DNA of 64,000 nucleotides from Penicillus capitatus (Eukaryota; Plantae; Chlorophyta): positions 1,549,197-1,613,196 of the forward strand of contig OZ287694.1 of assembly GCA_965649825.1 (NCBI GenBank), in the 5' to 3' direction. The notes below the pieces were generated by a model. That model had not been told where the DNA came from and made no database searches. It saw nothing but the letters and a program-made list of their open reading frames with translations. The position numbers were made by a program, and so were the translations under genes. Shown one piece after another: positions 2,734 through 53,397 of this stretch. Every line of letters starts with the position of its first letter. Within the stretch, counting starts at the first letter, position 1.

Positions 2734-3872
2734 GAACTGAAGGGACAGTTGACGACTGTGCCGAATAAGACCACTTAACGACAGAATACTTCTATCAAGC
2801 CGTTTGCGGACAATGAAGACTGAATCGCGAATACAATGACCCACTTATTGAATTTCAGCGCACGTCGATCGTATTTGTTTTCCTTGAAGACATGCATGAT
2901 GAGGCGGTGTACTTTTTGGTGCTGAGTTTCCTTACATTCAGCGGCTTGTGATTCTTTTCTATACATTTGCACTCTTTTGACGCTAAAGTACGGACCGTAC
3001 ATCGTCTTTATGCTTCATGATTTTGCACCGACCCTGCCTTCCACTCTTCCCACATCGCAGGGTATCATTTCCCGGCTTATGATATATCATTTTGTCCATT
3101 TTCGCTAATCAACATTCAGCCTTTAGTCGAGACTCCTGTATTCACATATCGAGCCGTTTTTTGAATGAGAGATCATACATGTCGCTGACCAGATCGTTAT
3201 CTTTTATACGACCCCGTAGAAGTACACTCGTATAAACCTCAATCCTACTTAAGAGTCACTATCAAAAGACTGTCTTTCGTGAGGTCTTCTTGTTGGTTTT
3301 ACAGAGTCGACATCGATTGTGTACAGTATTGCCAGACCTATTTGTCTTCTGCCAGAGGCACCTGTTCTTCCTTTTTTGCTCTGCTTCTAAACTCTTGTAC
3401 AAACCTATTCGAAACAACAACTTAGTGGATTTTATGGACGCGGTCGAACGCAAAGAATGGAAGATTCTGGATCATTCTACTGTGAACTGCAGCACTAAAT
3501 ACCTCAGCGAAAGGCTTTAAACATACATTCACACACTGTCAACTGCAGGACAGGAATATTCCTTTTTCGTCAAACCGTAGATGTATAATGTCGTTCACTT
3601 TTTGTGGATACCACTGCTTCTCTCTGTCCGATTGCCTTGTAGAATCTCATTTTTTATATGGGCGATGAGAACAGTGCGCATGTTGAATGACAGTGAACCA
3701 TCCCAGCCACTGCCTTGTCGTCGTCATGGAGTGTTATTACTGGATACCCGATCCATCAACAATGCATTCTTATCCCACATCAATATTTTAAACAATCTGT
3801 TTGAATCATCTACATTTCTGTATTAAAAGGAACTCGTCTGAATGTCCGTCAACCATTCCTTGCTGTTTACAG

Positions 3873-4983
3873 TCAGCCCGATGAACTTCCAAAAGCAACG
3901 TATTGTAGAAGAGTCATAGGTCCCGCTTCTGTAATTTCATCCAATTCCTCTTCGGACTTGACGAACAGTGTCCCCGCAAATGCCAGCGCGCTGCACAGCA
4001 GAAAGCCTCTCAGCAAATCCGCAGTCGGTTGCCGAGCGTTACTTGAGACTGCAGTGTCCGTGCTTCTCGTGACATCTGGGAATCAAGATGAACCAGTCCA
4101 TCGTCCAGATCACATTGTACGAGGCCATCTCCTCTCCGAGCCAAGGACGAGCATCTTGCAGGAGACCCAAATAAGCCTCGTGGATCTCGCTCTCCTGCCA
4201 GTCTCCGCTAAGACGGACACCGAAGGCACGGAAAGGGACTTTCAATGCCGTCACATCACCCTCGGGTAAGCACGCCTTGTAGTATGCATCCAACGGCAGG
4301 GGAGAAGAATCGCACAGCGGCAGCGGCACCACCTACGACCATGCATCGCACACGTGCCCGTCTTCCCGCATCAGACGCGCCTGGATGTGTTTGTGAGGTT
4401 GACTGGCGCCGGACATGGGACCGCAGTTAAAGAATGCGACGCCCCCTTCTGGCATGCACTACACTGAAGACGCTTTCCGGGCCTCTCCGCAAACACTCCC
4501 TCACTTTCAGCGTCTTCCATGTCGCCGAGACATCTGCCAGTGTGAGTGGCCGGTGCTGATGCTCGTAGCTACGCGTCACGACCAGGACGTGGCGATCCAC
4601 GAGATTAAACTTGTTCAGCAGGAGCACGTGCGTCTCGCTGAGATCCATCACCCAGAGATCCGGATCGTATGGCAGGAACGGATTCCCCTTCTTATCTCTC
4701 AAACCATCGCTCTGCACAGCGACATCGCATTGCCGAGGCATCGGTACTTGGTCGTGGCGTTGGATTTGCGTTTGAGGGCCTCGGAGATACGCACGACGAA
4801 GTGCCCTCTGCTGACGGGGTCTTCCAGGAGGTGCACCTTCGTCGGGGTCTTCATCACGGCGCCTCGTTGCTCGGCACGACGATAGCGCTCTTCGATGCCA
4901 TTCCACAGTTCGCGTCCGGCTGAGCACATCGTTCGCGGAGTCGACGTCATCCAGCGGAAGGAAACGCGCGCTGTCAGATGCAT
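3873..4983 (-). CDS. ATP adenylyltransferase / diadenosine tetraphosphate (Ap4A) phosphorylase
   Basis: NPFLPYDPDLWV, HVLLLNKFNLVDRHVLVVT, AFFNCGPMSGASQPHKHIQ|VVPLP (HxHxQ motif), YNVIWTMDWFILIPR, ALAFAGTLFVK. The start could be 4983, 4950 or 4929. Confidence 0.88.
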
Positions 4984-4994
4984 CGAACGGCAGA

Positions 4995-6839
4995 ATGATG
5001 GAAATCGACGATATCGAAGACATTCCGCTGCCGCTGGACGTCACCCTGCGTCCCCGGCAGAGATCCGTGGCGCTCCGTCAACGTCAGCAGGAGCCCGGTC
5101 GAGGACAGGGCGCCGTTCCGGGGACGCATGCCATCTGGGTGCGCACTTTCGGCTGCGCGCACAACCAGAGCGATTCCGAGTACATGCTGGGTCAGCTGCA
5201 GAGCTATGGATACAGGCAAGCAGGAAGTGGATGGCGGAGAGGGGAGATGTGCTGTTTGGTTTCTAGACTGGTGGAAGAGAAGGAGACGGCCGATTTGTGG
5301 ATTGTCAATAGCTGCACGGTGAAGGGTCCCAGTCAGTCTGGTATGACAAACCTGGTCGAGACGGGACGAAGACTGGGGAAGAAGCTGGTCGTGAGTGGCT
5401 GCGTGCCGCAGGGTGATCGACGCAACGCCGCCATCAAAGACCTGAGCGCCATCGGTTCTCCTGTGCCCGCAGAAATGACAGCCGTGATGTGGCGGCGGTC
5501 GTGCCCTTAGGTGTGACGCAGATCGATCGCGTCGTGGAAGTGGTGGAGGAGACGCTGAAAGGGAACGTAATTCGATTGCTGACGAAGAAGGAATTGCCGC
5601 AGTTGGATCTGCCCAAGATTCGCCGAAGTCCGTTCGTCGAGATCCTTCCTCTCTCGACTGGATGCCTCGGTCGCTGTACTTACTGCAAGACCAAACATGC
5701 CAGAGGTCCGTCACATCATCCTTCTTAACCGTCAGCAGCCTCCATCGATGGAACAGGCGAGTTGGGAAGCTACGATCCAGATCTTTTGGTCAAGAGAGTG
5801 AGAAGTGTAACCTCAGATCCGATGGTAATGGAGAGGAATGCTTTTCAAAGATGGCGATGGTTGGGGTGTGTAGGTCAGAGAGATCTGGATGAGCAGTGAA
5901 GATACCGGCGCGTACGGTCGGGATCTGGGAACGGACATTACTGTTCTGCTGAGGCGCGTGGCGTCTGTTCTGCCGTCGGACGGTCGTACCATGCTGCGGA
6001 TCGGCATGACCAATCCTCCCTTCATTCTGGAGCATCTGGATTTTATCGGTCGCTGTCTGAAGCACCCCTTTGTCTACTCCTATCTCCACATCCCAGTGCA
6101 GTGCGGCAGCAACGCCGTTTTGGACAGGATGAAGAGAGAGTACACCGTCGAAGGTTCGGTCACACTTTTCTCTCGCTGATTTCTCACACTTTTCTGTTCT
6201 GCAGAATTCGAGCACGTGTGTGATACGCTGTTGGCTGCCTGTCCGGAACTGGAATTGGCGACGGACATCATCTGCGGTTTCCCGGGCGAGACGGATGAAG
6301 ACTTTGAGGCGACCGTGAGACTCGTGCGCAAGTATCGCTTCCTTCACTGCCACATCAGTCAGTTCTATCCCAGACCCGGCACACCTGCCGCCAGGATGAA
6401 GAAAGTACCGACCAAGACAGTGAAACAGCGCACGAGGGCTCTCACATCTGTGGTCGAGAGTTTCACCGACGGTTACGAGCATCTGATTGGACGCGAGAAA
6501 ACGGTCTGGGTGATGGACACTGCAGCAGATCGGCATCATCTGGTGGGCCACACCAAGAGCTACACCCAAGTGCTCTTGCCTCCCCAAGAGGGTCTGCTGG
6601 GATCCGTCGTCAAAGTCCGAATCACGAGCGCGTCGAGGTGGTCGGTAAAGGGGGAGGTCATCGATTGGATCTTCGATCCCTGTGGCATCTCGCACGTACC
6701 GCCGCCGGCGGCGGACCTCCCGGCGACGCAGGATGTCGTTTCCGAGAGCTACTGGGACGTCTATTCTCCCTGGATCCTATTGACATTATTAATGGTGGTC
6801 TTGAGCATGAGCATCAAGGTGTTGTTAGACAGCCATTAA
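4995..6839 (+). CDS. CDKAL1: tRNA t6A37 methylthiotransferase (radical SAM; UPF0004 + TRAM + C-terminal TM anchor)
   Basis: [39 protein letters not shown] (CxxxCxxC), [42 protein letters not shown] domain and a hydrophobic C-terminal helix typical of eukaryotic CDKAL1. Confidence 0.93.
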
Positions 6840-9800
6840 AATCCGTCTGTCTCCAGGAGGGACATGACGGATGCGATGATCGGATCCTCTCGCGTATCCG
6901 CCTCCGGATTCTGGATTCTGTACGCCAGAATGTTCTCCACCTCTTTTCGCAGCATCTTGATCATGACGCCCACTTTGGGATGCACATGAAACACCGCCTT
7001 CCACGCAGGTAGTGTGAGAATACCATCTCTGTGCTGCAGTCGTAGACTGCCGCCCGAAAACACCAGCATCGCGTAGACAGGCACCATGGAACACTGTCGC
7101 ACGTAGACCTTCTCTGCTCGGGACAGGGACGTGACAGGAGCCGTTGCCAACAGATGCCGTACCCGTCTCGATGATGTCGGTGTAGACGAGCCACTCGCTC
7201 TCGTAGTGGGGCACCTTGAAATTGACAGACGCTGGATGGAGGAAGACACGTCCTTTCTCCCTTTCGTAGAACTTGAGCTGCTTGGAATCGGCATCGACCT
7301 CTTTGGATCCACCCTGCGTCGCCACATATCTGAAACCGCCACACTTGTCTCTTGGCTCATGGCTAGCGCGGCGGCGCACTTCTTAGGAGGGTGTTTCACA
7401 CGGATGAGATTCGGATAGAATCCAGCGCAGAGAGCCGCTCTGACGAATCTCGAGTTTGCGGCGAAGGCATCGAAATGCGGATCGTCTTCCGAAATGCCCC
7501 GAGCGATGCGTTGGGCGTAGGATGGCGAGACGAATCCGACATCCGCCAAGATGCGTGCGATCTCGGCACGGCTATCCAGAACGGCAAAGAGCGCCTCCGG
7601 TGAGAGGAACCTCTCCCGGCAGAATGCCACAGCGCGAGCCGATCCTCCTACACAGCAACAGTGTCACAAAGAACGATCGATCTGCACGGGGGAGATGACT
7701 TCTGAGATTGGACTCCTGAAACATCTGCACGGCAGAGAGGAGAGCCATGTGATCACTCTTTGCGTTCTGATAGGGAGCATAGATCTCGCGCTTGGCCGCA
7801 TTGGCCGCGTCCCTTTTCTCCTGCGGACAGACGAAGAGCGGCCGCTCGTACGTCAGCGCCGCCGCCAACGTCAGCATCGGATTCACACACTTCAGCAGCG
7901 CGCCGTAGATTAGCATCTTGCCTAAAGTACATCAAGCTCACGAACAGAGAGAGGGATGGGGATGGCGCACCGATGTGCACGTCCATCGGCATCTTCATGA
8001 GATGTCTTCCGAGAGGCGTGAGCGTCTGCCGTTCGTCAATGGCACCCACGTCGCGCAACGTTATCACTGCCGCTTCCACCTGGGCGGCGCTGGGACGCGT
8101 CAGGCATTCCTGCAGGTGTTTCTGCAGCGAAGCGGCGTTTCCCATGAGACTCAGGACAGTCAGACACAGAGACTCTAGCGGCGTGCGGGTGATCTCTGGC
8201 GCCGTGAAGTCGGCCAGGCGATCCCAGTGATCCGTCGTGACCGCCCGAAAACAGACGCCGCATTGGACCCTTCCTGCGCGTCCCGCTCTCTGCTTTGCGG
8301 ACGCCTTAGATATCCATTGCACTTTGAGTCGGCTAACGCGCTTCTCGGCATCGTAGCCGACTTCCTTGGCCAGGCATGTGTCGATGACGACTGTCACATC
8401 AGGGATCGTCACACTGGTCTCGGCCACGTTCGTCGAGACAATGATCTTGCGAACGTCAGGGCCGACATCTTGAAAGACGCGTCGCTGCTCGGCGGGAGGG
8501 AGCGACGCGTAGAGCGGCAAAACCTGAACACGCTCGAACGACGGAAGCACCTTGGACGACTGCAGCATCCGCACAAGGGTATGGATCTCTGCCGTTCCCG
8601 GTAGAAAAATAAGAATCGCGCCGTTCTTGCACGGAGGCGGCGGGTGTGCAGAGGATCCCCCTGCCCAATGTCGCGTCAGGAAATCTGGTCCTCGATCGTG
8701 TTCCCCGCGGATGACATAGCTCACTAGCTTCTCCAGAAGGGCATAGTCGATCTGATCCACGACCTTAGTGCGTCACCGTGTAGAGGCAGGAGAGTGACCT
8801 GCATTTCGTCCTTGTTTTTCTTCTTCTTCGATGCGTAATGGTGAGTGAATGCTTCGCCTTCGTCGCTGTCAGCATCGGTCATTTCCCATCCGCTTCGCCG
8901 AGCGCTCTGCCGCGCGGCTTCCAGCGCTTGATGGATCTGTTCCATGAAGAATTCTCGAACGGGGAAGGTGAAGCCAGGGATGTTGAGAATGGGCACTTCT
9001 CCTGCCTGCAACAGCTACGAGCTACGGGAAGGGAGCAGAAGGAGGTGGACCGTTTGGGAGAAGTAGGCTTGGAATTCCTGTGCATTTGCTGTAGCGGACA
9101 TGAGGACGATCTTGGGACAGCGAATCCTAGACGGACGAGAGGCCGACTTCTCCAGGAGTTTCTTGAGCAGGAGCAGCAGGAGATCCATCTCTACTGTTCG
9201 TTCGTGCACTTCGTCCACCAGCACGTGACTCACATCGTCCAGCGTTCCTTCCGACACGAATCTCCTCAGGAGAATGCCTAGTGGAGGATGGGACGGGTCG
9301 CATCACGCGAAAAGACAGCGCGAAACGCACACCTGTCGTGCAGTAGAGCACACGGGTTCTCCTGGACTGCGAGTGCTGGTTCCGGACAGAGAAGCCAATG
9401 ACATCTCCAACAGACTCGGAACGCTCCTCGGCCACACGAGCGGCCAAACTCGTGGCGGAGATGCGTCTCGGCTGGGTGCAGACGATGTTGCAGCCAATAC
9501 CGTTGCCACTGGCAACCGCGTCTTCCAGCAGAAACTGAGGGACCTGTGTGCTCTTCCCGCATCCAGGCATTCCTGTGATGACAACGACGGGGTGATGCTT
9601 GACCACATCGACGACCTGGGTGGACGATAGATCACATCGCTGGTCTCGTTGAGAGTATGGACCTGGGATGAGAACATCGCGGCTGGCAGAGCTCTTCTGG
9701 CCTTGAATGCGTCGGAGGGTGCCTGATTGCCTTCTAGGCATGCCTGACGCCGTTGCAGCTCTGCATTTTCGCGTTGAACCTCCGAAGCGCTCCACTTCTT

Positions 9801-11965
9801 TAATTGCGAGCGAACTAAATTGATGGAACGAATATCTTGCATTGTCGGATGATGTGACAGCACACCTGGCGGCTTCCTTGTTCGAGGAAGGAGTGCGTCT
9901 ACTTTCTCCTCCTGTTTACCGATCTCACTCTCTATGGGCTCATCATCTTCACTGTCCGGCTTGGGCGGATCTTTGGAAGCAGCTGCAAAAGGGAGGACGC
10001 TCGGGAGTCTTTGGCGAAGGGATGAAGACTTGGAAGTTGGAAGTCTGGCTGAGCCGCTTCGTACAGCAGTTCCATCAACGCGTCAATTAGGCTGTGCACC
10101 ATGGCCATCTCCACGAATTCTGCGCTCTTCTCTGCCATCTTCTCTGTCAGGTATCGCACAAACGCATATTTCATCGAAGGGCAGGAGAGGGCCAATAGAG
10201 GCAAAGTCGATGGATAGTCCTGTCCAACCTCGCCCACCACCATACGCAACGATTCCTTCCCATCCTGCACACCACGCACCTCTGCCAATAAACCAGCAGG
10301 GAAGGCACTACTACCGTCAGAGGCCGCTGTTTCCAAACGTGTGCATTCGCAGAGGCAAGGAGCTCTGCAGGGATATCAAGAAGAAGCTCCACAGAATGCG
10401 CGTCCGGTACACAGCAACAGTCGCCGTAAATGGCAACGAGCGCATCGCAGTCTTCCTGCCACGGCGATTCATCATCATCTCCCTCCCGCAGCTCCTCACT
10501 CAAACAAATCCCTGATGCGTTCGGCTAAGACAGTTGCCTGTCGCGTCAGTATCGATCGCACCTGTGAGTTGTGTGTACAGGAGACGATGGGCCAGTAGAG
10601 GGTCTCCATCTGCCATATGCAGCGCCTGGAGGATTTCGGGAAGACGATAGCCGTACTGCACCAAGGTGTCCACGTCGGGATCTTCCGTCTCGCTCCACTC
10701 CATCTCACCGTCCGACGCCTCCTCCTCCGCGGATGCTTTGATAACACCGACCGTGTGCGTCTTGGATCCTGAAAACCGCATCCTGGCATCCAAGAAGCGC
10801 AATGCGTGTGTCGAAGCTTGCGTTTGTTGAAAGACGCTGGGAGCTCAGATTCATCCAAATGAAAACAGAGCCAATCGAGAACAGACTCCGCGAAAGACCC
10901 TGTCGGCTGTTGCGTTGCCTGATGCATGGCCTGATGGATGTCTTCCTTTGAGAAACCGTCTTTCATCAGTCTATGCTCCAACCTCTTCCACTCCTCCCGC
11001 ACGCCTCCTTTACCGTCCACGACCCGGCGCGGATATCGATCCTTCAGCATCTTCTCCACGACCTCTTGCTTGGCGTGACTCATCACAATGGCCTGCGGCT
11101 CGCGTTCGAGCTTCTTTGGAGGCGGAGGCGGCGCGTCTGTCGCTTTCTGTCGCTTCTGTTCATCGTAAATCACTTTGTGGTAATTCCAGACGTCAATATA
11201 CTGTGGAGGCAAGACCCGATGAAACGCGCAGTCACCTTCACCGACACCTCCATCTTCGCGAGGGGCCCTTTCGAGTGCGTAAACGAACCTGCCACGTGAC
11301 AGAGGGCAGCCGCCGCAGCCGATTGCACCATCGCTTCATCGACGGCCTCGCTGACGAGTGGATCGTCCAGGAAGAGAACGATGTCTTTCTTGGCATCCTT
11401 CATGTCCGGCACCACCACCTTCTCACTCCATAAGCACTCCAGGCGCCCACTGTGTGACATCTCACTTTGCAGTAAGGCTTTCTGCCCTCAGATGTGACAG
11501 GTTTGTAGATCGGCTTTCGGCGGTTGTTTCGCTTGCACCACTCAAAGAGCAGCAGCTTTGGTGATTTGTGCGTGTAGTAGCCACTCGCACTCCCGACATC
11601 CTGAACGGAGATGCCTGCCTTCTGATCCACCTTCAGACTGCCTCTTCTTCCAATGTCACACATGACAGCGTGCTCACCTCACTCTTCGCCTCCGGAGGCG
11701 ACTCCTTGGAAACGACAGCGGCATGATGCTTCGAAACGTGTTCCTTCAGTCGACCACTCTGAACACGGCGACACAGTCTCCGCAGCGAGAGGGAATGGCG
11801 TGGCTGACGCCGCACCTGCTTGAAGATGCGGTCGCAGTGAGGGCAAGGGTGTTCGAGGTCGCGTTTGTCTGGCAACGGTGGGCCGCTGTTGCCGCATCCG
11901 GCTGCTCCCGAGGTGAAGATACCCGCCTTTGCGCGTCTGTTGTCTCGGTTCTTGATTTTTCCCAT
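6836..11965 (-). CDS. DHX57: DEAH-box RNA helicase, DHX57/DHX29-like, with N-terminal C2H2 finger, dsRBD-like, UBA-like and RWD-like regions
   Basis: [59 protein letters not shown]2 (LTPLGRHL) and OB-fold (VFLHPASVN). N-terminal [11 protein letters not shown] and [13 protein letters not shown]. The 5' end at MGKIKNRD (11965) is joined through a predicted phase-0 intron. DHX57 versus DHX29 is not resolved. Confidence 0.85.
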
Positions 11966-11973
11966 TTTACACA

Positions 11974-13021
11974 ATGCAGCTGCATGCCGCCGAACTCGAG
12001 CCGTTGGCACTCTACTTCGACGCACGACTTCGTCTGATTCCTCTCAAGAACGTCAACGCGCACGAGAACGACGAAACGCAACGCGTGTCGTCAAAGCAGC
12101 GAAAGGAGGAGCAGAAACGCAGAGAAGCGGCGAAGAGAAGCGCCTACCGAGCGACATTCCGACCCCCGTCTGCACGAACGCACACTTCGGGTCCAGAGTC
12201 GAGCCATGCAGATGCGGAAGGGTGCGACGCGGAGCAGGACGTCGCTATGGATGAGGAAGCGTGCTCTGAGGAAGGGATCGAAGGCGAAGTGACACGGGCA
12301 GTACTCAAAGAGCGATTGGAGGCGAAGATCGCCGCCATCCGACAGCGAACGGGATCGGCCAAGATGAGGAAGAAATCGCAGCAGGAGAAGAAAAACGCGC
12401 AGAGTGCTGTGAAGGCGAAGAAGAAACGCAGAAGGAATGCCCTTCAGAAACGGAGACGTCCGGAGGCCTCTGCGGACGATGGACCGCCGCCGAACAAGAA
12501 GGCGAAGAAAGAGAGCGAAGAAGAGGCAGTGGTGCTCAAGTCTTTGGCCTTTACCGAAGTGAAGGAGATAGAGGGAGAGAGAACGATCGGCAAGACGGGG
12601 AGGAAGCGCCGCATGGCTGAGAAGTTCCGCCGATTGGGGGTCGCTCAGGAACAGAAGGAGACGACCGATCGTTTCACCCAGACGGGCGAAGGCGGAGAGA
12701 AGGTTCGCGGACGATGGGTCGATGCCATGCCCCGACATGCCGCGTTCGTCTGTGCAGGTGATCCAGACGGAGTGGAATCGGGCGCTGCAGCGGGCGAGCG
12801 GAAAGAAGGTGCTGGACGATCCGAAACGGATCCAGAAGTCCATCGACGATGCGTTCCGCCTTAAGGCCAGGAGGGCCAAGAAGTGGCAGAAGAGGTGGTC
12901 GTTGGTGGAAGAGGAGCAGACGGAGAGGCAGGAGAAGAGGAAGAAGAATCTCAAGAGAAGATCGGAGGAGCGAAAGAAGAAGAAGGGGCAGCGCAAGGCA
13001 CAGAAACGCGCAGCCGTCTGA
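11974..13021 (+). CDS. SURF6: Surfeit locus protein 6 / Rrp14 nucleolar ribosome biogenesis factor
   Basis: N-terminal RRP14-like YFDARLRLIPLK, LKERLEAKIAAIRQR, K/R/E-rich middle, C-terminal WNRALQRASGKKVLDDPKRIQKS and AKKWQKRW. One intron near 12710-12765. Confidence 0.85.
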
Positions 13022-13024
13022 ACT

Positions 13025-13915
13025 TCATTTTTGCTCGACACAGGTATACTGTCTGTCCAGTTTCGTGCTGCGACACAGAGGGCACTTCCATTTGAGGTAT
13101 CGCTCTGCGGTCTTGGCATCCAAGTTCACGCACTCTCCACAAAACCATCTCTTGCAGTAGTCACAGTATATCCAGAACGTCCCTTGCCTAAAGACGACGC
13201 ATCTCGCACTTTGTGTTGTGTTGGAGAGATGTGACTTGTAATGCTTATTGCAGAGGGGACAGGGATCGCCGTCGCCATCCTGCCACTCATCTTCTTCTCC
13301 CTGACCTGGTGACGGACTGTCCTGAGATTCTTGCCCTTCGAAAGACGGTTCGCCCAGACGATTGTTAATGTCCTGACTGGAGGTCACTATCTCGAGCAAG
13401 GGTGTCTCCCTGTTCATCATGGTAAAGAGTTGCTCCCTGCATTTGATGTGACGTTTGGCGGAGGGAGCCGAGAGTGACAGACCGTTGCTTATGAGTCAGG
13501 CAGAAGGAGCGGAACAGGGCGACACTTAACAACCAACTCTCCGCATGGACACACACAAACGCCAACCAGGACAGCTTCTGAACAGCTTCCTGCCTTAGCT
13601 CTCTGTTATGCACGACGACGCATCTTACGTCGAGGCTGTCACGCGGACAGTTAATTCCGTTGCACGGCTCGGGGATAACAGGTGGGACTTCATAGGAGGG
13701 TGGACCCACGTGCCAGGTTCCATCTGGATTCCCGAACAGACAGAGTCCTTCTCGATGAGGCGCACAACTGGCAAATAATTCGTCCACTCTACAGAACGCA
13801 CAGTCGTGGCGAGAGGGATGGAATGGAAGGAAGACTCTGTCGTCAGGGCGCGGAGAATGGCGCCGCGTCGAGTGGACCACTCGTCGAAGATGTCGGAGAC
13901 GGAGCGATCCACCAT
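13025..13915 (-). CDS. Alfin-like PHD finger protein (Alfin/DUF3594 domain + PHD)
   Basis: RSVSDIFDEWSTRRGAILRALTT, GLCLFGNPDGTWHVGPPSYEVPPVIPEPCNGINCPRD, WLAFVCVHAESWLLSVA, PHD CPLC...FWIYCDYCKRWFCGEC...WKCPLC. Four short introns. Confidence 0.9.
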
Positions 13916-14520
13916 TTCTCTGTAGAGACGCGAGCTCAGACGAGAGAATGAGCACAAAATCGATCCGTACGCAAAGATGTACGACAAAGAGGAGACGTCA
14001 GCTGCCAGTTTGCAGGTCGGATCTCAAAGTCTGTCAGCGTCGCTGTCAGATAGAATCTCCCGTCGAGGAAGGGACAGACATCTGCGCTAGGTGTGACAAG
14101 GAAGAGTGAGATTGCCCGTCGTGGTGAACAGACGCCGGTCGCTGAGTCCAATCACTACACTTATCGCACAAATCTCCATGCATCTTTTAACCGTACAGTT
14201 CCTTGACCTCGAGCACAGAATCTGGCCGACTGTGTGTTTGAATGAAGAGTCAGCAGGAGATTTGTCAACAGATAAGTGTCCTTTCATAGAAGGACGTCAC
14301 ATTCAATGCAAGCCCGGCAGAAATGCTTCAAAAACCGCAAACTCCTTCACGCGCTCCTGCCAATGCTCGACATCGTTCTCAAGTCAGGATAAGAGTTCAT
14401 TCAATTCCTGGAAGCTCATCGACAACAGACAAAAAAAAGGAAAAATCTGAATCTCCAGCACTTCATCTGACTGCTCTCCGAGAGAACACTTGTTTCTTCA
14501 AAGTGCTGCCGACATCAGTT

Positions 14521-17104
14521 CTACTGAATCTGGGATAAAAGGTCGCCTATCTCTTTCATCTGTTTAAGCAGTTCTTTGATTTTTCCTTCAATGATCGAAG
14601 TCTGATCAAATAGCGACGGCGTCTTTGCCGCTCCTCGCATTGAACCACTTTCTGTCAGTCCTACGGTTGCGCGGATCTCTTGAACTTCTTTCCTAAAACC
14701 CTTAGCCACTTCTTCAATCCTTCCATCCCATACTCTGTTCCTTTTCTTCCGTGTCCCGTCGATTGGAACCAAGTAGTGAAAGTACTTGCACCGATGTCTT
14801 GGCTTCAGGGAGGTCAAACTGTGTATGGAATGACTTGCTTTCTGTACACAATAACGAGGCAAGTTTTTCAGCTTGTTCCAAATCGTCCCTCTGAGACAGA
14901 ACCGTGACAGACAGCAACGAAGTGACAGGCACTTGCCTCGACGATTCCTTTTCGATGATGTCGTGCGCGACTGAGACGAAGGCGGCGCTCACGATCTCCG
15001 CTCGACACATAACCAGCTCTTCCTCCTCCCAATGCTTGATCTTGTCAAAGCTGTCGCTCAGAATGGCGATGAGGAGATTGAGGCAGATGATGGCGCCGAC
15101 AAAGAGGAAGATGGTGAAGAGGACAGAGCGCCAAATACCGATGAAACACGTCTCTTTCATGGAGCGGAATTTCTGCTCTCCGACAACAGACAGGCATTCC
15201 ATCAAGCCATGGAATAAGGCAAACGAGCGGCGCACCTCCTCCTCGAAGTTTCTGACGCTCGCCTGGAAGAGTATCTTCACCGTGTGGGGGAAATCGAGAT
15301 CTGTGTCGTTGTTCTTACACTGATCCTTATGATCATTCAGCATCGAAACGACGGACGAATTCGCGTACGCTGCAGGAGGCGTACCCGATCCAGCTTCGCA
15401 GTCGTTCTTTTGGTTTTCTTTCTGATCGGTGTAGACGAAGATGACCCGGATGGCGAAGGAGAATCCGAACAAAACGGACGCGCCCAGTGCCATGAAAGGT
15501 ACAACAGCTTTGAACGAATCCTTCACCATTGACACAAACGGCCCGGTCCTATCGAAAGGGAGAAGCGCTTCGACGACCTGCGCCACACACAGCAGAGTCA
15601 CGAGATCATCATCTGCAGGATAGACAGACACACCAGAAACCAAACGAAGGCGCACTCGAAGGAGGTGAGGAAGGCGGAGATGTCGTCATGTCTGGGGTGA
15701 CCAAGAACGTGACCATAGCTGTCGTTGTTGTCGTCGTTGTGCAGATTGTATGCACCGAGAACGTGGCAAAGGATAGACACCTTGATCAGGATGCTTATAA
15801 TCCTAGATTCGCCATTCCTGCATCCTTGCTCTCGATGATAGACGGACGCACTTGATGCGCGAGAATCGGATCAGCAAGGAAAACGATGGCACGGCGCAGG
15901 AGGCTATGATGGTGACGATCGAGATCATTTGTCGAGGATCTGCGTGTCTGTAGTGCTTCTTGATATCATTATCCATTCCATAGAACCAAGCGAAGCACGA
16001 AAACAGCGCAGCAGTAAACAAGTCCAAGAAGACGAGCAGGACGAAACGGTTGTACAGAGAGTAGAACATCCAGTTGGCGAGTGTGGTCACTGCCTGAGAC
16101 TTGAAGATGTCGTGAGGAAGATTGGCCGTCCAGATCCGACGAAGCACGTGGTTCCAGGCATAGTACAGTCTCCGTCTACGATGCGTGATGGGGGCTTTGG
16201 AACGACAGATTCTGACAGCGTGCTGATCGATGCAGAAGAACTTGGCCGCCACCTCGACTTGAAAATCGGTTGACGCTTTTAGCTCGTCGGCATGCTCCTT
16301 GCATTCATTTATCCAGAATTCTTTCGCCGTTTCCGAGTCGCTTATTGTAAATTCCTCCAGTTGGTCATCTGTCGTCATGGCGATCGGTCGCCTGCCGTTC
16401 TTGTCGATCAGCGACAGCGGCACCGAGAATCTGGCGTATTCGAAAGCAAAGCTGTCATTCTTGATGTAGTCCTTCATAAGATCGGGAAACTCTTTCATCA
16501 ACGGGAAGAGATAGTTGGTAAGAATGCAGCAGGACTCCTCCACTGGCAACCTCTTCTCCGCCACGCAGTCGAGGATGAACTTCGCGACGAGCTCGGCCCC
16601 GTTGTCCATCGCCCAGTCCAGTGTTCGACAACGACCAGTGCCGATGATGACAAACTTTTTGGCGCTCTGCGCATGCTCAAGCAACAGCAACGCACTCTCA
16701 CGATGTTTCTGGACAATGGCGTCGCAGAGAAGTGGCGTGCCATTCCTAGTCGTCACCATGTCGACAAGCTCCTCTTCGTACTCAATGATGAAACTGCGCG
16801 AACACGTTTGGTCGTTAGCCGAAGCGTTCGTGCGTCTGGACTTACTGATTCGTTATTTCTTCGGTCCAGAAGGGAACGTCGATGTCGATTCGATGCGCGC
16901 CGAAATTGAGGGCATTGTTTTCTTGTCCTGAAAAACAGAAGCGCGTCAGACACCGCGTCCAGAAAGGAACGTGTCCGCCTCGACAAGTCCGTCCATGATC
17001 GATCGCCTACCTGTATGTTCGTTCGGATTTGGTCCAACCGAACGCGCGTGTTGTGAACGTAACGGCGTTGCGAGGCCGTTGGCATCTTCGGAGTACGGAT
17101 GCAT
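14521..17104 (-). CDS. TRP-like cation channel (copy B); multi-exon
   Basis: Exon 1 MHPYSEDANG..., exon 2 IDIDVPFWT (matches copy A), ankyrin-like GTPLLCDAIV / RTLDWAM, pore VKILFQASVRNFEEE, S6 AIICLNLLIAILSDSF, YFHYLVP, coiled coil. Confidence 0.8.
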
Positions 17105-25814: not shown

Positions 25815-27300
25815 CGCTTTACAAACGCTACACGCAGAAGCAAAACAGAGACCGTCACCACGACGCGACAGAGGAGCGAGTACAAAGTGAAAAAAAACGC
25901 GTTATTCGATCTCTCTCTATACGCATATCTACTTATGAATGACACATCTGATTACACATAACGGCGACAGATGCCGCGCGACAGTTCGTACGGCGAAACT
26001 GTCTCGTGTTATGCCATCACGGTTCATCGTAGAGTAAAAGACAGGCGCATAACGTGGAACGCACGAAAGGTCGGTCCATCTTCGTATGGTTATCTCGGTT
26101 TGCGTTTACGTCGCAGCGACACTCATCGAAGAGCTATAGTGAAGCGTCATCCGCAGAAAGAGTAGATGCATTCGACCACCTGAGAAACCTGCCGGCGTCA
26201 TGACCGTCGGGAGGAAAACCACGGCAGGCTGTTTCGTTCTCTGTCACGTCGTTGTCTAAGTCAACGGAGTCGGTCCTCTCCGACGATGTCAAACAATTCT
26301 CTAAAGCGTTCAAGTGAACGTTGCATCGTTCTGCATTGTTATCCTCGTCTCGCAGAAAGGAATGGAAGACTCCGCAAATCTGCAACAAAACAATCGTTGT
26401 TCCCCTTCACTCGTTCGACCGTCTCCATGTCGACCGTCGATCGACGCTGCTGTCAATAACAAGCTTTTCAGCTGATCTTTATGTAAACGACTAGCGCACT
26501 AACAAAACATCTCGTGATTGAAAAAGCGTCCGCGAGCTTCGTCGCCTTGATCAAAAGGCAAAGATCACGACAGCGTTAGCGCTCATTTTTTGACCATACC
26601 CAGCACCTCGATGTCCGTCACTGTCACTGCCACATGCCAGGGGACGACAGTAATGGATAGATATTTTGTACAAGACGATCCGTCCGTTGGAGCTGTGATC
26701 CATATGGCTACCACACTGAAGAATCCGAGTCTTTTCGAACAGGTTCTGTTCGTTTGCACCGCGACTTTCTGCAGAATTCTTTTAAAGGATAGCGATGCAG
26801 GATGATAACAGCGACAATGTCGTCGGCGTGAAGGCAGCTAGCTCACTTCGCTTTCGCCTGTCGCAAATCAGAAGGATGTCAAACGACGCCCGCTTGACCT
26901 GTACTGACGCGTCCTTAGCCTCCGCGGAATCGTTGTCGAGACAAAACTCTTTGCTCTAAATCCGCGAACACTGAGATTTAACTCTTGAGTTTACTGCTGA
27001 CACGAGAATCGACGATCGCCTTATAGGAAGACCGTAAGCCAGAAGTGGCCGGTCAGACGACGGCGAAAAGTGTCCATTCTATAGACCAACCTGAGGGTTA
27101 TCTTCGTCAGCGCGCTCTGCAGCTTCATGCAAAAAAGCATTAGGCGACAGCTCAGAATGTTCGTTTACCTACTGACCTCTCTCCGCAATGGAGAGGAACG
27201 ACGAATAAGCACGTCTGTCGAGTGATACGTGCAAGAACAGTTTCGTGAGAAAAGGCAATGGGGAACGCATCCGTCAGTCTACCAACAACCCTTCTTTTAC
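25815..27300 (-). pseudogene. Decayed, possibly WD40-like relic; diverged paralog of 49730-50800
   Basis: Patchy DNA similarity to 49730-50880, many stops and indels, fragment GHFSPSSDRPLLAYG on the minus strand. Confidence 0.35.
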
Positions 27301-27426
27301 AGAGCGTTCTCAATAACGTGCGACACAACGATCATTCGCTAACCAATCTCGCTTATTCAAACGAGTCTAAGAATTTTCAAATGAGAATTTGTACTGGAAA
27401 GATAATCAAATGCTTCTGAAACGACT

Positions 27427-29970
27427 TCATTCGGCAGATGTGTCAGGTGGATCCTGTCTTTGAACTTGGTCGATGGAGGTTTCCAGCTTGCTCATTCTCT
27501 CCTCCATGCTTTTCTTCCAGTCTTCCATTTCGTCCAGTTGACGTGCCATTTTCTCAACCAGGGATGCAGTTGCCAAACACGGGGCCATCAGTTTTTCTAT
27601 CCTCTCAGAGTGAACGCAGAGTTGTTTGCCAATGTTGTCAACAAGACTCTGTTTGGTCTTCAGCGCCTCCTTCTTGACGACTTTCTCGAGTTCCACAAGC
27701 CTGCCTTGCCATTCTTTGTTGGGCGACGCTCCGTCGATGTCGTTTTCCAGTGTCAAATAATGGAAGACTCTTCCAGTCATTGAGTGGGCGAGGAAGTCAG
27801 CAGAGCAGAAGTCTCCATTCCTCCGGATGAGTTTACCGAAGTTGGAAACAAAAATCTCATCCGTCCTTTGAGCCAAACAGATTTCGTGAGCAAATGTTAA
27901 AGCCTGATGATGCACTTACTGGTTTCTGCGTCCAGTAAGGAAAAATCTCAGCGACGTTTGAAAGCCGGAGATAAGCTTCATCTGTCGCTTTTTCAGTTCT
28001 GCTCCCTCCCTCGATCGAACTCTGTCATACGTATCCGTCAACACAGCGACCAGCAGGCTCATGAGTACAATCCCGCTGATATAAATGAAGGAACTGAACA
28101 GCAGTGATCTCCAGACAGAGAGGAAACCACTCGAAGAACGGAGCATCTGTCAGGCAGACACGTCAGTTAGAATGGGAGTCTATAGTAGGGAGGCACTCAA
28201 CCACACCTCTCCTTCAAAGCTCCCGACAGAGGCATGGAAGAGAGTCTCGAGGGCTCGCGGAAGAGAATCAAACAGCTTTTCCTCGTCGTTGACGAATTCT
28301 TCGTCGAAGAGCACCAGGAATGCCGTCGAGTAGCCAAGCATCAGGAACAGTCCAATCAGAAGAAAAGGCAGAGAATCTGATAGAGCATACTGGACCATCG
28401 TCAAGAATGGACCTGTCCTCCTGAACGCCCGGAAAAACCGAAAAATCTGAACATCCCGAACAAGCTGTCAATACTCAGAAGAAATATTCGATGGAGAGTA
28501 CCCGCATCCAATGGAGGATGCATAAAAAGGATGTCTGGAAAGCAGTGGCAGTGTTCTGATGGTCGATGAGACAGATTTGTGGCAAGAGCACAAGTGTGAG
28601 CAGCAAAGTGCCAAACCTAAAGCAATCGACACGTTGCTACTCGATTCACTGGCAGTGTGATCTTCTACCTCAGAACGGATGTCCGATAGTACAGTCCAAT
28701 GGTATGCGACACGAGCGCAATAGACATCAGCACGATTAAAGTCGTATGATTGGACCCGTCTCCGTGTCTAAAAACCAGGGCAAAGCCTGTGAAGGTTGAG
28801 GTGGCCAACATATCGAGAACGAGGACTGTTAGAAACAAAGAAAGATATGTCTGAACCCAGGAGAATGTAAGCACTCTCAGCGTCTCGGACTCGTAAATCT
28901 TGACTGGACTGTTGGAACGAGTGAGGACATTTGCAAGAGTCTCACTATCCCACCTATACACAGAGGAGTAATAACATAAGAGATGATCTTCGAGCTTCTA
29001 CCCTGTTTCTGTTTGGCTTCCGCTGTAGCTAATGCAGAAGAACTTTGCAGCGGCCGCTACTTGTGTGTCCATGGATTGCATACTAGCTACAGTCGTGCTA
29101 CCCGCGAGCATTCCACAGCCTTTCCTTCCTCTCCGATTTTCGAACAAGGGAAACCAAAACATCTTTGCTTCATCGCGGTTCGCAGTGTTCCAATCCTTTA
29201 ATCCGTAATCGGTGAACAATCCAGCCAGGTACCCACTCTTGATACGACACGGAATCTGGGGCACTCGGAATCTGGCGTATTCAAAGGTGAACTTATCCTT
29301 GTGCAAGTAATCCCACATAAGGTCCGGATACATTCGGACGAGCTTGCGGAAATGCAGGTTCAGAAGGTAGCACGTTTCTCTGAGGGAAGTGAATCTCTCC
29401 AGCAATTTGTCCAGAATGAATTTGACATCTTCTACGGAATTCTTCTTCATAGCCCACGATAGAAGATCCTCGTGTCCGCTCCTAAATGTCAACAGAGTTC
29501 CTTTTTCTTTCGCAAACTGGAGAAGCTCCGTCGCGGCATCGTGGTTCTCGGTCTTAATCAAACGCCAAACAAGTGGCTTATTCGTCATGTCGACGGCACT
29601 GAAGATGCGGTCTCCATGCTCAGAAATCGCTCTGTCCAATGAACAAACATAGCATTAGGTTCGTTAAGAAAGCCAAACGCTGTTTACTGTTTCATGTCTT
29701 GAATTGTCCAGCTCCGTACATTCTCAAAAACAAGTTTCGTCATACAGCGGACGGAGTTGTCATGAGGTTCTAGAGGAACAGAGACCGCCCATTCGAACGA
29801 TGACACGTGGAAGAAGAAGCCTAGGTTCCTAACGCGTCACCTCGTGTCGGTTCTCTTGTTGCCAGTTGCGTTATTTCAATACCCTCAGTACTGTCCTCTT
29901 GCTGTGCGTGAACTGGTTGCGTAATGTCTTCGTTGTCTTCGCGAATTTCGTTTCCGACACGTGCAGACAT
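27427..29970 (-). CDS. TRP-like cation channel (copy D); multi-exon, arginine-rich S4
   Basis: MSARVGNEIRED... with the family's phase-1 and phase-2 first introns; KPLVWRLI / DLLSWAM / FEYARFRVP; S4 HWMR|IFRFFRAFRRTG; pore FDSLPRALETLFHASVGSFEGE; S6 IVLMSLLVAVLTDTY; FHYL; coiled coil. Confidence 0.8.
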
Positions 29971-31598
29971 TCTGTTAAACGACATCACCGAGGGAGAAAC
30001 GGTTAAAGCAAGGAAAGGTTGAATACAGCTCGCGTCTCATAGATGGTTCGCGTAAAAATCTGCTATCGGTTTGAGGTCGCAGTTAAGTTGATGTCGGTAG
30101 AAATCGCTCAATGCTCATTGTAATGTCAAGATGAAACCGTGGGAGTCATTTTTCCAAATCCGGTTACAGACTTCAAGCAATTTAAAGTTTATCACTAATT
30201 GACATGACCACCATCTTCTTTAGGGAACAACGCTTTGCACTTGAAAATGCACTGCTAGTTTGTCTTTCTCACATTTCGAATGACATTGTGCTTTCGGTGT
30301 TCTGAGGAAAATGTCACACAAAGGAACTTTGATGGAGGGAAAACTCTGATGGACATGGATGATGCGACGTTCATCTACAGCATTTTACCTTTACAAACTT
30401 ATGCGTCCTCTCATCGGCGCTCCGCCGTCTTGAGCGAGTGCAGAACGCGACGACCAATCCTCGCGGCGAGAAATCCCTCGGTTGGGGCGTGTCATGCAAT
30501 CAAAATAATCGAACTTGTGATATCTACCCGAAGAAGATGAAGCGCTTTGTCGTCCGCTTTGACATCCAACTTGAAGAATGTGCTATCTATCTACTTGCCA
30601 ATACTGCCTGTCTGTAACGCAAACGAGTTCCGGGGAGATTTTTTTGAGTAGAAGGAAAGATACAGAAAACGAAATCGACGCAGAGAGCCAGTATCCCTGA
30701 ACATCAGCCAAAAGATAGGAGAAGGAAAAACAGAAAAACGACCTAAAGAGAAGGAGACCGTAGCAGTGCCTCCAGAACAGATAGGAGCAAATTGAAGCAA
30801 ACAAAACGGCGAAGAATCGGACCAGTGCCGCCGACAAACAACCAGTTATTTCAGCTGCTGACATCACTGCTCGGAGCAAAAGGGAAACAGGATTCAGTCA
30901 GTTCTTTGCAATCAAGTGTGCGACAATGCCTAAGGGGAATACGGTAATGCGTGATGAAGGTGACCAGCCACCAAGAAGCAAAAATGATTGGGTGGACTCT
31001 CCGTCTGTTTGTATGAGTCTTGTTATGGACACGTCGAGATGCATGTGTGATTCTTACTGGCTTTGTAAGGTCAGTGCCGGAATGGACGAGAGTAAGTGTC
31101 GTTTCTCGACGACAGCGAAGTCGTTCAGCGGTCCATTCACTGCTGCAACCTCCAGATCTGCATCCATAGCGATTACTTTCGTGAGCGTTTGCATACACAA
31201 GCATTGTCGATTGCAGTAGACCACTAGAGTCGCATCGTAGCACACAGAGAACATAGCACCACTGTAGGAGCCTTCGAAGGGGAGAAGACAACAAATCGAC
31301 AAGATGGGCGATGAACGAGTATTGAAGTGTCATTGCGCACTCTACGATTTAGATCGCATTTGCACAGCGGCGATTGATAAGCGATTCAGTCGAAGCACGT
31401 ATCGTTCAGCTCAGTCTTTGGACACGGTTTCAGGCTCACCGTAACAGTGTAGTCTGGCAGATAGTTTGGTAGAAACGGACGCGGTTATTGACGTCCTTGA
31501 TGGGACACATTCACGAACCCATTCGTGACAGTTATTATTGAATCAATGTGTTTGGATAAACGAACAACAACAACAGTTTATACTCAGCCTCAGTTAAC

Positions 31599-34066
31599 TC
31601 ACTCCTCATCGAGCAGCGTAATCGGCAGTGCTTTTTCGCGGAGTGGGCTAACATGAGCGTAGGCACTCTCATGGTTTCTATGATCCCTTGGCTCCTCTGG
31701 ATATGCGAGCACATATCCAACGAACTGTGAAACAGCCTCGTCATTGTGCTTGACAACAGAGGCATAAACATCATCTCCAACATACTCCAGCCTCCACACA
31801 CATGCTCTGTCCTTACTGTAAACACAACGCTACCAAATCAGACTGTGACCCGACATTGAAGAGAGGCAACTTTTCTGGTGTTGTGAAGCAGCAGAAATGA
31901 GTCCCTTGATCCACCTCATACGAAGTGGGAGGCAGGACTGTCAAGTAACTGCCTTTTACAGGCCTTCTGAGTCTGGGGTCAGGATCTGTGTGGATCTTGA
32001 CGAAGAACTCATTCGGCCTGTCTGCGGCCTCTAGGCACACTGTGATAGTCCTGTTGGTATCCGAGTGCCAAAAGGCGTAGATGCTCGATGCATCTCTCTC
32101 ATCATGATTCCAATACATACGCGAAGTCATAAACAGATCACCCATCGCGCAGAATCTTTTCAGCCCCGGCTCGATAATACGAACTGTGGTACTGCGATAT
32201 GACAGAAGAGGCGAGAAAATCAGGTGTACCTGGTTCATTGAGCAATCGCAGAGGTCTGATATTCTTCTGAAGTGGAATGGATATTCTCCTCGATGGCGTG
32301 CGAAAGTAATGGTAGTTAAACTTGCCGTAAGAATCTAAGCCCTCGATCAACGTTAGAGACGTTGTGTCTAATGCAGCATCTTTTCCTCGCCCCACTAACC
32401 TCCACGTGCCTTCAGATGCGGTGCCTTGGCGATGACCAGCACTGTCTTCGGCTCTCAAATCTCCATCCAACTTGTACTGTGCCAGGAAGTTAGAAGGAGA
32501 GAATGGGCTGTCGAGGGGTTCATTCTCAGATCTGGGGAAGTACAGAGAGAGGTGCATTGCGCCGTTCATCTTCCAATTACCACTCAGCACGTGTCCCACT
32601 CGAATGCTTTCTGGCGACTCTTCGATCGATAACCAGCCTCGCAGACCAGAGTCTTTCTTCAACGAAAGCAGCATTCTGCTTTGATACTCCTTTCCTTCGG
32701 CACCAGCGACGATCCCTTCCATTTCTAGAAGACCAGGACGAAGCAGGATATGGTACTGCAACGGAGGTGGCGTAAGCAAAGGATACTCGAAACTGTGAGA
32801 AAAAACAGAGCCTGCTGTCGTCTGTCCAACGAATGTAAATGACTTCTGAATGGAAGCAACGGCGATGTGAATGCCTTCATACTTATAGCGCACACCAGTG
32901 AAAAACAGTCTTGGATTGGAGGCTTCCCACTTTCCCCCCAGAATCAAAAATTGCTGCTCATTGTTGCTGTCCTTCGCTTCAGGGATCACACACCCTTGCA
33001 CGTTTTCATCTGGATCAAGACAGATGAGAAGGTAGGCAGATTCCACAGTGCCATCTGCTTGTTTATGTTGACCATATCCTTCGTACAATCCTGGCTCGAG
33101 TAAAGGCTGTTCTTCCTTCTCACTCTGCTCTTCTGCCGTCCCCTCGATCTCATATGCAGAGCACACCATGCTCTTAACCAAGCGGTTCGGAATCAGCTCG
33201 CCGGATCTGATCTCCATCCTGTTTATCGGATCCTTTCTGTGTCCCTTTCCCAACCACTTCACGATGCTATCTCGCTCATACGTCATGCCTGAGTCCCTCA
33301 GCAGGACCGGGTCCTGCATGACTTCCTTGCTAATAGGACAGCGAAGCTGATCGAGAACGGCATCTGACTGATCCGAGGACGGGGCTGCTTCACTCTTCTC
33401 TATAGACTCTGAAATCACATCGATTAACTGTTGCAGCTCGAATTCGTACAGTGCGTCTTTGTCCTTTCTTGCCTGGTGGATGTAGTCCTTCAACACATCC
33501 AAGTCCTGCAGTTTGGCGTCGACGGACATCGAGTGTTCCTTCATCATGTCGACGATGATAGACTTCATCTCCTCTGTCCCTTTCAGGTTCTTGTTGAATG
33601 CCTTCTCCATCTCTTCTTTCAGCATCTGAGTCTGATGCGTTGACGCCGCCGCTCTGTCGAATTTTGCGCGGCGCAGTTCATCCGTGAGCACGTTCACGCA
33701 TTTGTGCATCTCTCCCGTGACTGGAAGACTGGCGAGGGGTACTTGCTGCAGCGCGTGCTCCAGCATCTGAGCCGCCCGCTTAAGCGCTTCGCTATTCCTC
33801 CCGGCACAGAACATCGCGGTGAGATACGTCGGCTTGCAGCACGTCTCTATGACTCTGTCCGCTTCGTCGAGAGCGGCGAACACGAGGTCCATCGCCCTCT
33901 GAAGCGACGGGTCATCAACTGGGTGCTGCTCCAGTGTGTGTAAAAACGGTTTCGTCTGCTGCGCCAACGAGGCGAGCAGACTGCAGTCTTCTGCGTTCGC
34001 CACGGCGCGTTCGGCATGGTCGGCTATGCCTTCGACTACTTTCAAGGCCACGCTCAGAGGATCCAT
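31599..34066 (-). CDS. U-box E3 ligase-like protein with an N-terminal MLKL/MCAfunc-like four-helix bundle and C-terminal beta-rich repeats
   Basis: U-box LRCPISKEVMQDPVLLRDSGMTYERDSIVKWL...DPINR...LIPNRLVK. Helical N-terminus MDPLSVALKVVEGI...LDEADRVIETC. Repeats LLEPGL / LLRPGL / IIEPGL. The unspliced ORF ends at 32138; the extension to 31599 needs two predicted introns. Confidence 0.75.
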
Positions 34067-37381: not shown

Positions 37382-38181
37382 GTGATTGCGAAGGATACAA
37401 ATCAACCTGCTTTACAACGACATCTCTCAGTTCTCGTTTTGTTTCCCTTTACTAAAAGGCATGTCTAATGGGAAGATACTGTTGAGACACTTTCGATGGC
37501 ATTATGGCATTCCATGCCCTGCCGATGATGGCCGCAGAAGACCTTCCTGGTGGGATTTTCAGCAATCATTCATTTCGTTATTTCCTCAGTTCCTCACTGG
37601 GGCAAGATCTAGCATACAAATCTTTCGCGTCTTTACCTGGACGAGAAACGTATGAACAACATGAAATCTTGATGGTATTGTGAAGGAGTGTTGTCTGTAT
37701 AGTGTATCCACGAGATCTCCTCACCGGAACTCTGTCTAGTGCGTCAAGACTCTGAACGAAGTTGCGCGGTGTCCACAGAAGACCGACCTCGATTTCGAGA
37801 TCGTTGAGATGTGGCACGGAGAGGCGCCGCTGCGCCGTTCATTCTGTGGTCACTGTGTTGTGCATCTCTTACCTCGAAGAGCTGGAAAGAGCAAAGCAGT
37901 GATAAAGGCATGGGGTTGTCAAGATCATAGCAATCTCTGTCGAAGGAAAACACCGTTCCCTCTGAAGCGGCATGCGTCCTGGAGCGAGCGTCGTACTCTA
38001 ATGTGGCTCATGTTTCAGATTAAAGCGTCGAACTGATCGACAACAACTTCTGCCACTGATGGAAGGACTGGTTCATCGTACTTCTGACAAACATTAAAGC
38101 AACATTGCATGCAATCTGAGGATACTGAAAACAGCAACGACTCTCAGCAAGAAATATTTTGACCGATACCCTTCTCCATCT

Positions 38182-52838: not shown

Positions 52839-52839
52839 G

Positions 52840-53387: not shown

Positions 53388-53394
53388 GGGGGAG
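53388..53394 (+). other. Polypurine tract of the TRIM
   Basis: GGGGGAG, 3 nt before the 3' LTR. Confidence 0.65.
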
Positions 53395-53397
53395 TCC

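Follow-up and report, generated by a model that had tools for sequence, protein, structure and literature searches.

Five intron-rich genes of alternating orientation packed with almost no intergenic DNA in a block conserved in three related algal species

The vertebrate Surfeit locus, as it is summarised in 10.1101/626713 (citing Duhig 1998), consists of unrelated housekeeping genes in alternating orientation with bidirectional promoters and very short spacers, and the arrangement is conserved. In Ostreococcus the mean intergenic distance is <200 bp, genes on opposite strands overlap and expressed sequence tags overlap at their 3' ends (PMC2367439), while overlapping transcription in nucleomorphs and microsporidia is mentioned in the same paper from earlier work (Williams et al. 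2005, cited in PMC2367439). Head-to-head gene pairs of animals, yeast and plants are enriched in housekeeping genes and are evolutionarily conserved (PMC1487180, PMC3403606). The locus analysed here is a block of five genes at positions 3873-13915 of a 64,000-nucleotide (nt) stretch of contig OZ287694.1 (positions 1,549,197 to 1,613,196; assembly GCA_965649825.1, Penicillus capitatus). This whole stretch is hereafter called the window. The initial annotation had described the block as five housekeeping genes with almost no DNA between them.

Six-frame inspection together with the raw sequence indicated that the five genes, g1 to g5, lie on strands -, +, -, +, - and that the gaps between their coding sequences (CDS) are 65 (g1/g2), -4 (g2/g3), 8 (g3/g4) and 3 nt (g4/g5). 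The strand order and the gaps of the initial annotation, including the overlap at the stop codons, were borne out with the same values by the rebuilt gene models; the 11 nt that it had also given for g1/g2 is obtained only with a less likely upstream ATG at 4983. The block totals 10,043 nt, made up of 8511 nt of CDS (84.7%), 1460 nt of introns (14.5%) and a net spacer of 72 nt (0.7%), and its 30 introns are all 40-57 nt long. GC content is 0.56-0.58 over 4-14 kb and 0.45-0.51 to either side. Since the strands alternate strictly, like ends meet at every junction, two of them head-to-head and two tail-to-tail. The pairs g1(-)/g2(+) and g3(-)/g4(+) lie on opposite strands with facing 5' ends and have start codons 65 and 8 nt apart, where the definition of head-to-head pairs uses transcription start sites <1 kb apart and the start sites of these two pairs may even lie crossed, and the CDS of g2 and g3 overlap convergently by a shared TTAA in all five contigs that carry the block. 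The block is not an operon or polycistronic unit, as the strand changes at each junction. We consider it likely that the five genes form an interlocked, evolutionarily conserved block whose control regions and transcript ends overlap. The genes and their spacers are the following.

3873-4929, minus strand: g1, Ap4A phosphorylase II / ATP adenylyltransferase, 286 amino acids (aa), 5 exons (3873-3990, 4043-4332, 4381-4458, 4505-4697, 4748-4929); stop TGA 3873-3875, ATG 4929, other in-frame ATGs at 4950 and 4983
4930-4994, no strand: spacer between the start codons of g1 and g2, 65 nt, candidate shared bidirectional promoter and 5' untranslated regions (UTRs); holds the in-frame g1 ATGs 4950 and 4983
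4995-6839, plus strand: g2, CDKAL1-type threonylcarbamoyladenosine tRNA methylthiotransferase, 528 aa, 6 exons (4995-5215, 5267-5454, 5511-5705, 5757-5824, 5874-6153, 6205-6839); ATG 4995, stop TAA 6837-6839, hydrophobic C-terminal tail
6836-6839, no strand: palindromic TTAA in which both genes stop, g2 TAA 6837-6839 (+) and g3 TAA 6838-6836 (-); 4-nt CDS overlap read directly from the sequence
6836-11965, minus strand: g3, DHX29/DHX57-like DEAH-box RNA helicase, ~1456 aa, ~17 exons; stop TAA 6836-6838, ATG 11965
11966-11973, no strand: spacer between the start codons of g3 and g4, 8 nt, TTTACACA
11974-13021, plus strand: g4, SURF6/Rrp14-family nucleolar protein, 330 aa, 2 exons (11974-12702, 12758-13021); ATG 11974, stop TGA 13019-13021
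13022-13024, no strand: spacer between the stop codons of g4 and g5, 3 nt
13025-13915, minus strand: g5, Alfin-like PHD-finger protein, 232 aa, 5 exons (13025-13187, 13236-13436, 13483-13577, 13629-13788, 13836-13915); stop 13025-13027, ATG 13915

Relatives of the block were found by a search with a helicase fragment, and near-identical and related proteins were present in metagenome assemblies only. The contigs were assigned to three species: species A, comprising the window and L003 (98.4% nucleotide identity); species B, comprising L001 and L086 (99.1% identical to each other and 84.6% identical in DNA to the window); and species C, represented by L002, which is alignable in coding patches only (65-71% nucleotide identity) and gave tblastx segments 29-90% identical. 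The source samples are ENA ERZ25074695 and ERZ26696514 and SRA SRR33785046. The order and orientation of the five genes were the same in all five contigs and all three species, and the gaps, in nt, were as follows.

g1/g2: window 65, L003 65, L001 65, L086 65, L002 67
g2/g3: window -4, L003 -4, L001 -4, L086 -4, L002 -4, with the same TTAA overlap
g3/g4: window 8, L003 8, L001 8, L086 8 (one substitution in species B), L002 9 (different sequence)
g4/g5: window 3, L003 3, L001 26, L086 26 (g5 ends 9 codons earlier), L002 11

The spacers of species C are unrelated in sequence to those of species A and B, so that it is the layout which is conserved and not the spacer sequence. Such conservation in three species shows that the layout is functional and not an accident of annotation. 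As regards the contigs themselves, L001 and L086 (ENA ERZ26696514; 149x and 154x) are megabase contigs of one sample that are 99.1% identical at equal coverage and probably correspond to the two haplotypes of a diploid algal genome; a similar difference, of 1.6%, separates the window from L003.

In species C the block has other neighbours, with a CPSF73-like gene at one end and genes for bS20-like and FtsH proteins at the opposite end. A check of synteny in related algae, which had been proposed with the initial annotation, showed that the block is kept in the three species, while CDKAL1 in four named green algae (Bryopsis, Ostreobium, Chloropicon and Picochlorum) has other neighbours at CDS gaps of 25 nt to ~2.6 kb. 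Two more distant helicase loci were likewise found without these neighbours, and the five-gene synteny is thus specific to this clade. The best named matches of g2 were CDKAL1 of Bryopsis sp. (69% identity) and of Ostreobium quekettii (67%), and the named proteins among the 120 g2 matches listed came from green algae and land plants only, which identifies the source of the block as a chlorophyte green alga. When metagenome contigs were scanned with the last exon of g2, the matches were all distant MiaB-like loci of 27-44% identity, none near the clade. The search for SURF6 homologues recovered its own clade only, owing to low complexity, so that it traced no older synteny of the g3/g4 pair.

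Comparison of the block with its surroundings revealed that identity to species B is ~0.85 across 3873-14060 and 0.6-0.7 immediately outside. The flanks in the window and in species B have poorly conserved spacers of roughly 0.6-1.1 kb, and the CDS of the nearest channel gene appears to end ~1.1 kb short of the g1 stop. Over the other 50 kb of the window there are roughly 12 genes (ion channels, MFS, U-box, serpins), that is ~4 kb per gene. These spacers and this gene density, together with a five-gene order that is kept where the flanks differ, speak against the explanation that the block is nothing special, being one sample of a lineage-wide compaction of the Ostreococcus type. For that explanation, on the other hand, one may cite the tiny size of all 30 introns, the opposite-strand overlaps known in Ostreococcus (PMC2367439) and the situation in species C, where the ends of the bS20-like (+) and FtsH (-) open reading frames (ORFs), convergent and outside the block (L002 15513-15541; unrefined models), apparently share 29 nt, tandem gaps being ~200 nt. 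Genome-wide compaction was not seen in the comparison, which is limited to 64 kb, although the flanks in species C are denser; lineage-wide compaction is in our opinion an unlikely explanation, but it keeps some weight.

In species C, ~200 nt or more remain at the two tandem junctions that adjoin the block, while the three convergent junctions of this species are all <=11 nt or overlapping, which fits a collapse of like-end junctions only. The overlap of the bS20-like and FtsH ORFs suggests that convergent genes of this lineage commonly abut or overlap. A possible rule is that convergent and divergent junctions can collapse, but tandem junctions, with a terminator next to a promoter, cannot. 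Under such a rule every junction can collapse only if the strands alternate strictly. The packing had been called extreme for intron-containing nuclear genes; this has to be tempered by the overlaps of Ostreococcus (PMC2367439), by a convergent gap of 25 nt in Picochlorum and by the apparent species C overlap outside the block.

Several features of the surrounding window were recorded. At least four Ion_trans channel genes or fragments in all are scattered over the two sides of the block (1362-2294, 14714-15655, 41069-41680 and 45832-46611), and the segments 454-1042 and 42253-42838 are 78% identical; the channel genes represent a local family expansion, and their conservation between species A and B is far below that of the block. 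A tandem segmental duplication joins 26911-39540 and 50388-64000 at an offset of ~24.46 kb, its two arms being 99.66% identical along 10.4 kb and 95.7% identical along another 2.2 kb. It includes copies of a U-box gene (32138-34111 and 56598-58571) and of a serpin gene (38362-39120 and 62822-63580), and its size is a minimum, as it reaches the window end. Neither Rfam families nor tRNAs were found in the window.

The roles of three of the five genes in RNA, tRNA or ribosome functions had been taken by the initial annotation as a hint of co-regulation. Under this explanation shared promoters and antisense overlap would co-regulate a functional cluster of translation-related genes (tRNA modification, translation helicase, ribosome biogenesis), and head-to-head pairs are indeed often co-expressed and conserved (PMC1487180). 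However, g1 (nucleotide metabolism) and g5 (chromatin reader) fall outside the theme, and neither CDKAL1 of Bryopsis, Ostreobium, Chloropicon and Picochlorum nor the two more distant helicase loci have these partners beside them. A functional cluster is therefore regarded as improbable.

Because the CDS of g2 and g3 overlap by 4 nt, their mRNAs must overlap. It is likewise a necessity of the sequence that a g3 or g4 leader of >8 nt would start inside the coding exon of its partner and that a g4 or g5 3' UTR of >3 nt would run into the last exon of its partner. In an interlocked block, g1 and g2 would be driven from a constrained 65-nt bidirectional promoter region, and g3 and g4 would each be transcribed from within the partner's first coding exon, so that their divergent units overlap, the alternative being leaders of <=8 nt. 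At the convergent junctions cleavage and polyadenylation would fall inside the neighbour's last exon and would yield 3'-overlapping sense-antisense mRNA pairs. The block would then be inherited as a unit, because a breakpoint between any two genes would damage one of them, and this would explain its persistence while the flanks differ. Start codons 8-9 nt apart leave no room for a non-coding promoter between g3 and g4, and no acceptor for a g3/g4 5' UTR intron was visible. A bolder and rather doubtful proposal, to be taken as tentative, is that this pair would have its start sites and promoter elements in the partner's first coding exon, with 5' ends obligately antisense in all three species and expression coupled; near-leaderless nuclear mRNAs would be the alternative.

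Alignment of species A and B showed that 57 of the 65 positions of the g1/g2 spacer are identical (88%) with no indel, against 0.70-0.74 for intron interiors (binomial p=0.0008-0.006), which fits a constrained compact bidirectional promoter/5' UTR. Two further features bear on the control sequences.

13916-14060, minus strand: conserved region upstream of g5, 145 nt, a conventional promoter/5' UTR outside the block; 83% identical between species A and B, vs 69% further upstream
12050-12055, minus strand: TGACGT box upstream of g3, inside g4 codons 26-28, at -90 in species A, -90 in species B and -96 in species C

The region upstream of g5 harbors a TGACGT(C) box (13995-14000, in minus-strand sense) at -85 from the ATG in species A and B and at -55 in species C, and TGACGTCTC, followed nearby by GTCGTACAT, is common to all three species. 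The TGACGT box upstream of g3 is kept though the encoded g4 residues differ (NVN vs KTS), and this suggests that it is a weak candidate for a g3 promoter element within the g4 CDS. The 6-mers shared by species A and C upstream of start codons were rejected as control signals, as they mostly reflect coding conservation of the partner gene. TGTAA serves as the poly(A) signal of many green algae. One copy at 3867-3871 (-) lies one base past the g1 stop (TGA-C-TGTAA) and is not conserved in species B; no TGTAA was found after the other four stops within their neighbours.

A number of results weigh against overlapping control regions and a locked gene order. For the TGACGT box upstream of g3, a shared-6-mer test returned p=0.12, which is not significant. 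Synonymous sites in the 50 codons nearest the junctions were conserved at 0.758, vs 0.723 in the interior, and this difference was not significant either (p=0.18), so that this test gives no positive signal for regulatory elements embedded in CDS. TGTAA, present in 34 and 28 copies in the window, was not concentrated past the stops and thus does not stand out as a poly(A) signal. The argument for locked synteny draws on three species only, and the start sites, poly(A) sites and any overlap beyond 4 nt are those that we infer from the layout. The proposal that promoters, UTRs and poly(A) signals lie inside the neighbours' exons consequently stands in part: the g2/g3 overlap and the crowding at g3/g4 and g4/g5 are forced by the sequence, but the synonymous sites near the junctions lend it no significant support.

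With leaders of <=8 nt, short leaders being the alternative that the initial annotation had offered, and very short 3' UTRs there would be little or no antisense overlap, the transcription units merely abutting. Very short leaders occur in some protists and microsporidia, and the TGTAA directly past the g1 stop hints that 3' UTRs can be short. However, the 4-nt overlap of the g2 and g3 CDS means that this pair at least overlaps, a 3-nt gap is too small for two 3' UTRs, and the 145 nt conserved upstream of g5 with a box at -85 suggest ordinary promoter spacing. Abutting units throughout the block are accordingly quite improbable, and overlapping transcript ends remain the favoured arrangement.

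The gaps would be artefacts if the true starts and stops lay hundreds of nt further apart, as may be feared of models built from sequence alone in GC-rich DNA with long random ORFs, where naive building failed twice. The final models were obtained by splice-aware dynamic programming for which tblastx matches to species C (L002) served as anchors, with manual fixes, among them three in-frame stop-free introns taken out by hand. Minimal-intron models and models based on codon usage only were rejected, as they used a wrong frame or skipped exons; the naive models fail because wrong-frame ORFs are long in GC-rich DNA. The homologue alignments that could have moved the ends apart were checked, and those with Pfam, DHX29 and species C instead back close ends. 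Peptides at the N-termini of g2, g3, g4 and g5 and at the C-termini of g2, g3 and g4 are kept in species C, and the Pfam profiles reach to ~5-15 residues from the ends of g1 and g5 and from the C-terminus of g4. The ATGs of g3 and g4 are each the first in-frame ATG past a stop, with the next methionine >90 codons on. Ends displaced by hundreds of nt are thus largely refuted and we hold them to be very unlikely.

For g1, whose exons were anchored by tblastx to L002, Ap4A_phos_N (6.5e-51) covered residues 6-167 and ATP_transf (1.2e-22) residues 182-281 of 286. The ATG at 4929 is favoured because it places position 9 of the Ap4A_phos_N profile at residue 6, because the sole homologous start in species C lies at the same site and gives the 67-nt gap, and because ATG 4950 is missing from L086. 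The g2 product showed the domain set of a CDKAL1-type protein, with Pfam scores of 73.5 bits for UPF0004, 73.9 for Radical_SAM and 23.9 for TRAM against cut-offs of 27, 29.5 and 21. The g3 product carries an N-terminal C2H2 zinc finger, UBA_DHX29, RWD, DEAD, Helicase_C, HA2 and OB domains (Pfam); interior exon borders in its N-terminal third are approximate. Its last exon aligned with residues 1281-1367 of the 1369 of human DHX29, within 2 residues of the end, its N-terminus MGKIKNRD... is kept in species C and no in-frame ATG was found upstream of its start. For g4, positions 5-195 of the 196 of the SURF6 profile (2e-17) corresponded to residues 130-320 of 330 and the N-terminus MQ...F.ARL.L is shared with species C; no match for SURF6 was detectable among PDB sequences. 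In g5, whose exons were also anchored to L002, positions 1-126 of the 127 of the Alfin profile (2.6e-42, 144 bits) corresponded to residues 5-130, and a PHD domain was found at residues 171-217 of 232 (25.7 bits, cut-off 24), so that both domains of an Alfin-like protein are present.

Analysis of the gene models revealed some peculiarities of introns and domains. Three of the 30 introns (~10%) are GC-AG, at 4333-4380, 5216-5266 and 10769-10821, with donors GCGCGT, GCAAGC and GCAAGC; the first two are backed by homologue alignment, and the third is less certain as to its precise borders. The usual share of GC-AG introns in eukaryotes is roughly 1%. The introns 5216-5266 (51 nt), 11759-11815 (57 nt) and 13578-13628 (51 nt) are in frame and stop-free, so that ORF scans read through them, and their removal restores the C2H2 spacing of g3 and the Alfin and CDKAL1 alignments. 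The PHD finger of g5 (13025-13187) has a cysteine at the canonical histidine position of the C4-H-C3 pattern (...CDYCKRWFCGEC...), and the same His to Cys change is present in species C (L002 5872-6003, ...CDFCENWYCGRC...).

Lastly, a chimeric or collapsed region in a metagenome contig has next to no probability: every source is a metagenome assembly, but the same arrangement occurs in five independent contigs of three assemblies, some of them long-read contigs of 1.2-1.8 Mb at 34-154x, and misassembly is thus ruled out.

The block provides a conserved natural example of loss of intergenic DNA in a nuclear cluster that retains many introns. Where orientations alternate, like ends can be shared or can overlap, and the interlocking may then freeze synteny, while the 8-9 nt between the start codons of g3 and g4 raise the question of how a core promoter is placed without non-coding DNA. 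The block is also a warning for annotation, since callers of the prokaryote style fragmented these genes and stop-free in-frame introns of 51-57 nt hide in ORFs.

Similar packing was looked for in a pedinophyte genome preprint and nothing relevant was found there. Among the known systems the Surfeit locus, in which one gene pair overlaps at its 3' ends, resembles the algal block in its unrelated genes, alternating strands, short spacers and conservation, and the block includes a SURF6 homologue (g4). Five Pfam architectures on alternating strands with spacers of <=65 nt in three species correspond to an arrangement of the Surfeit type; Surfeit spacers, however, are 97-374 bp, against algal CDS gaps of 65, -4, 8 and 3 nt. 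As g1, g2, g3 and g5 are not homologues of SURF1-5 and only g4 has a counterpart among SURF1-SURF6, the likeness is architectural and not one of orthologous synteny. With Ostreococcus the block shares opposite-strand overlap in a green alga, but the compaction there is genome-wide, in a picoalga with few introns, whereas here 30 introns are found in 10 kb between kb-scale spacers. The loss of intergenic DNA that forces transcript starts and ends into neighbouring genes recalls nucleomorphs and microsporidia, which however are reduced endosymbiont or parasite genomes, and the block belongs to an ordinary stretch of nuclear DNA in which gene families have expanded and a segmental duplication lies nearby. 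Head-to-head pairs resemble it in divergent orientation and conservation (65/65/67 and 8/8/9 nt in species A, B and C), but the usual pairs have <1 kb between start sites with a non-coding promoter, while the start codons of g3 and g4 are 8-9 nt apart. The block is thus an extreme case of a kind already known; it is unusual in that spacers of sub-10-nt or negative length, numerous introns, neighbouring spacers on the kb scale and retention in three species occur together.

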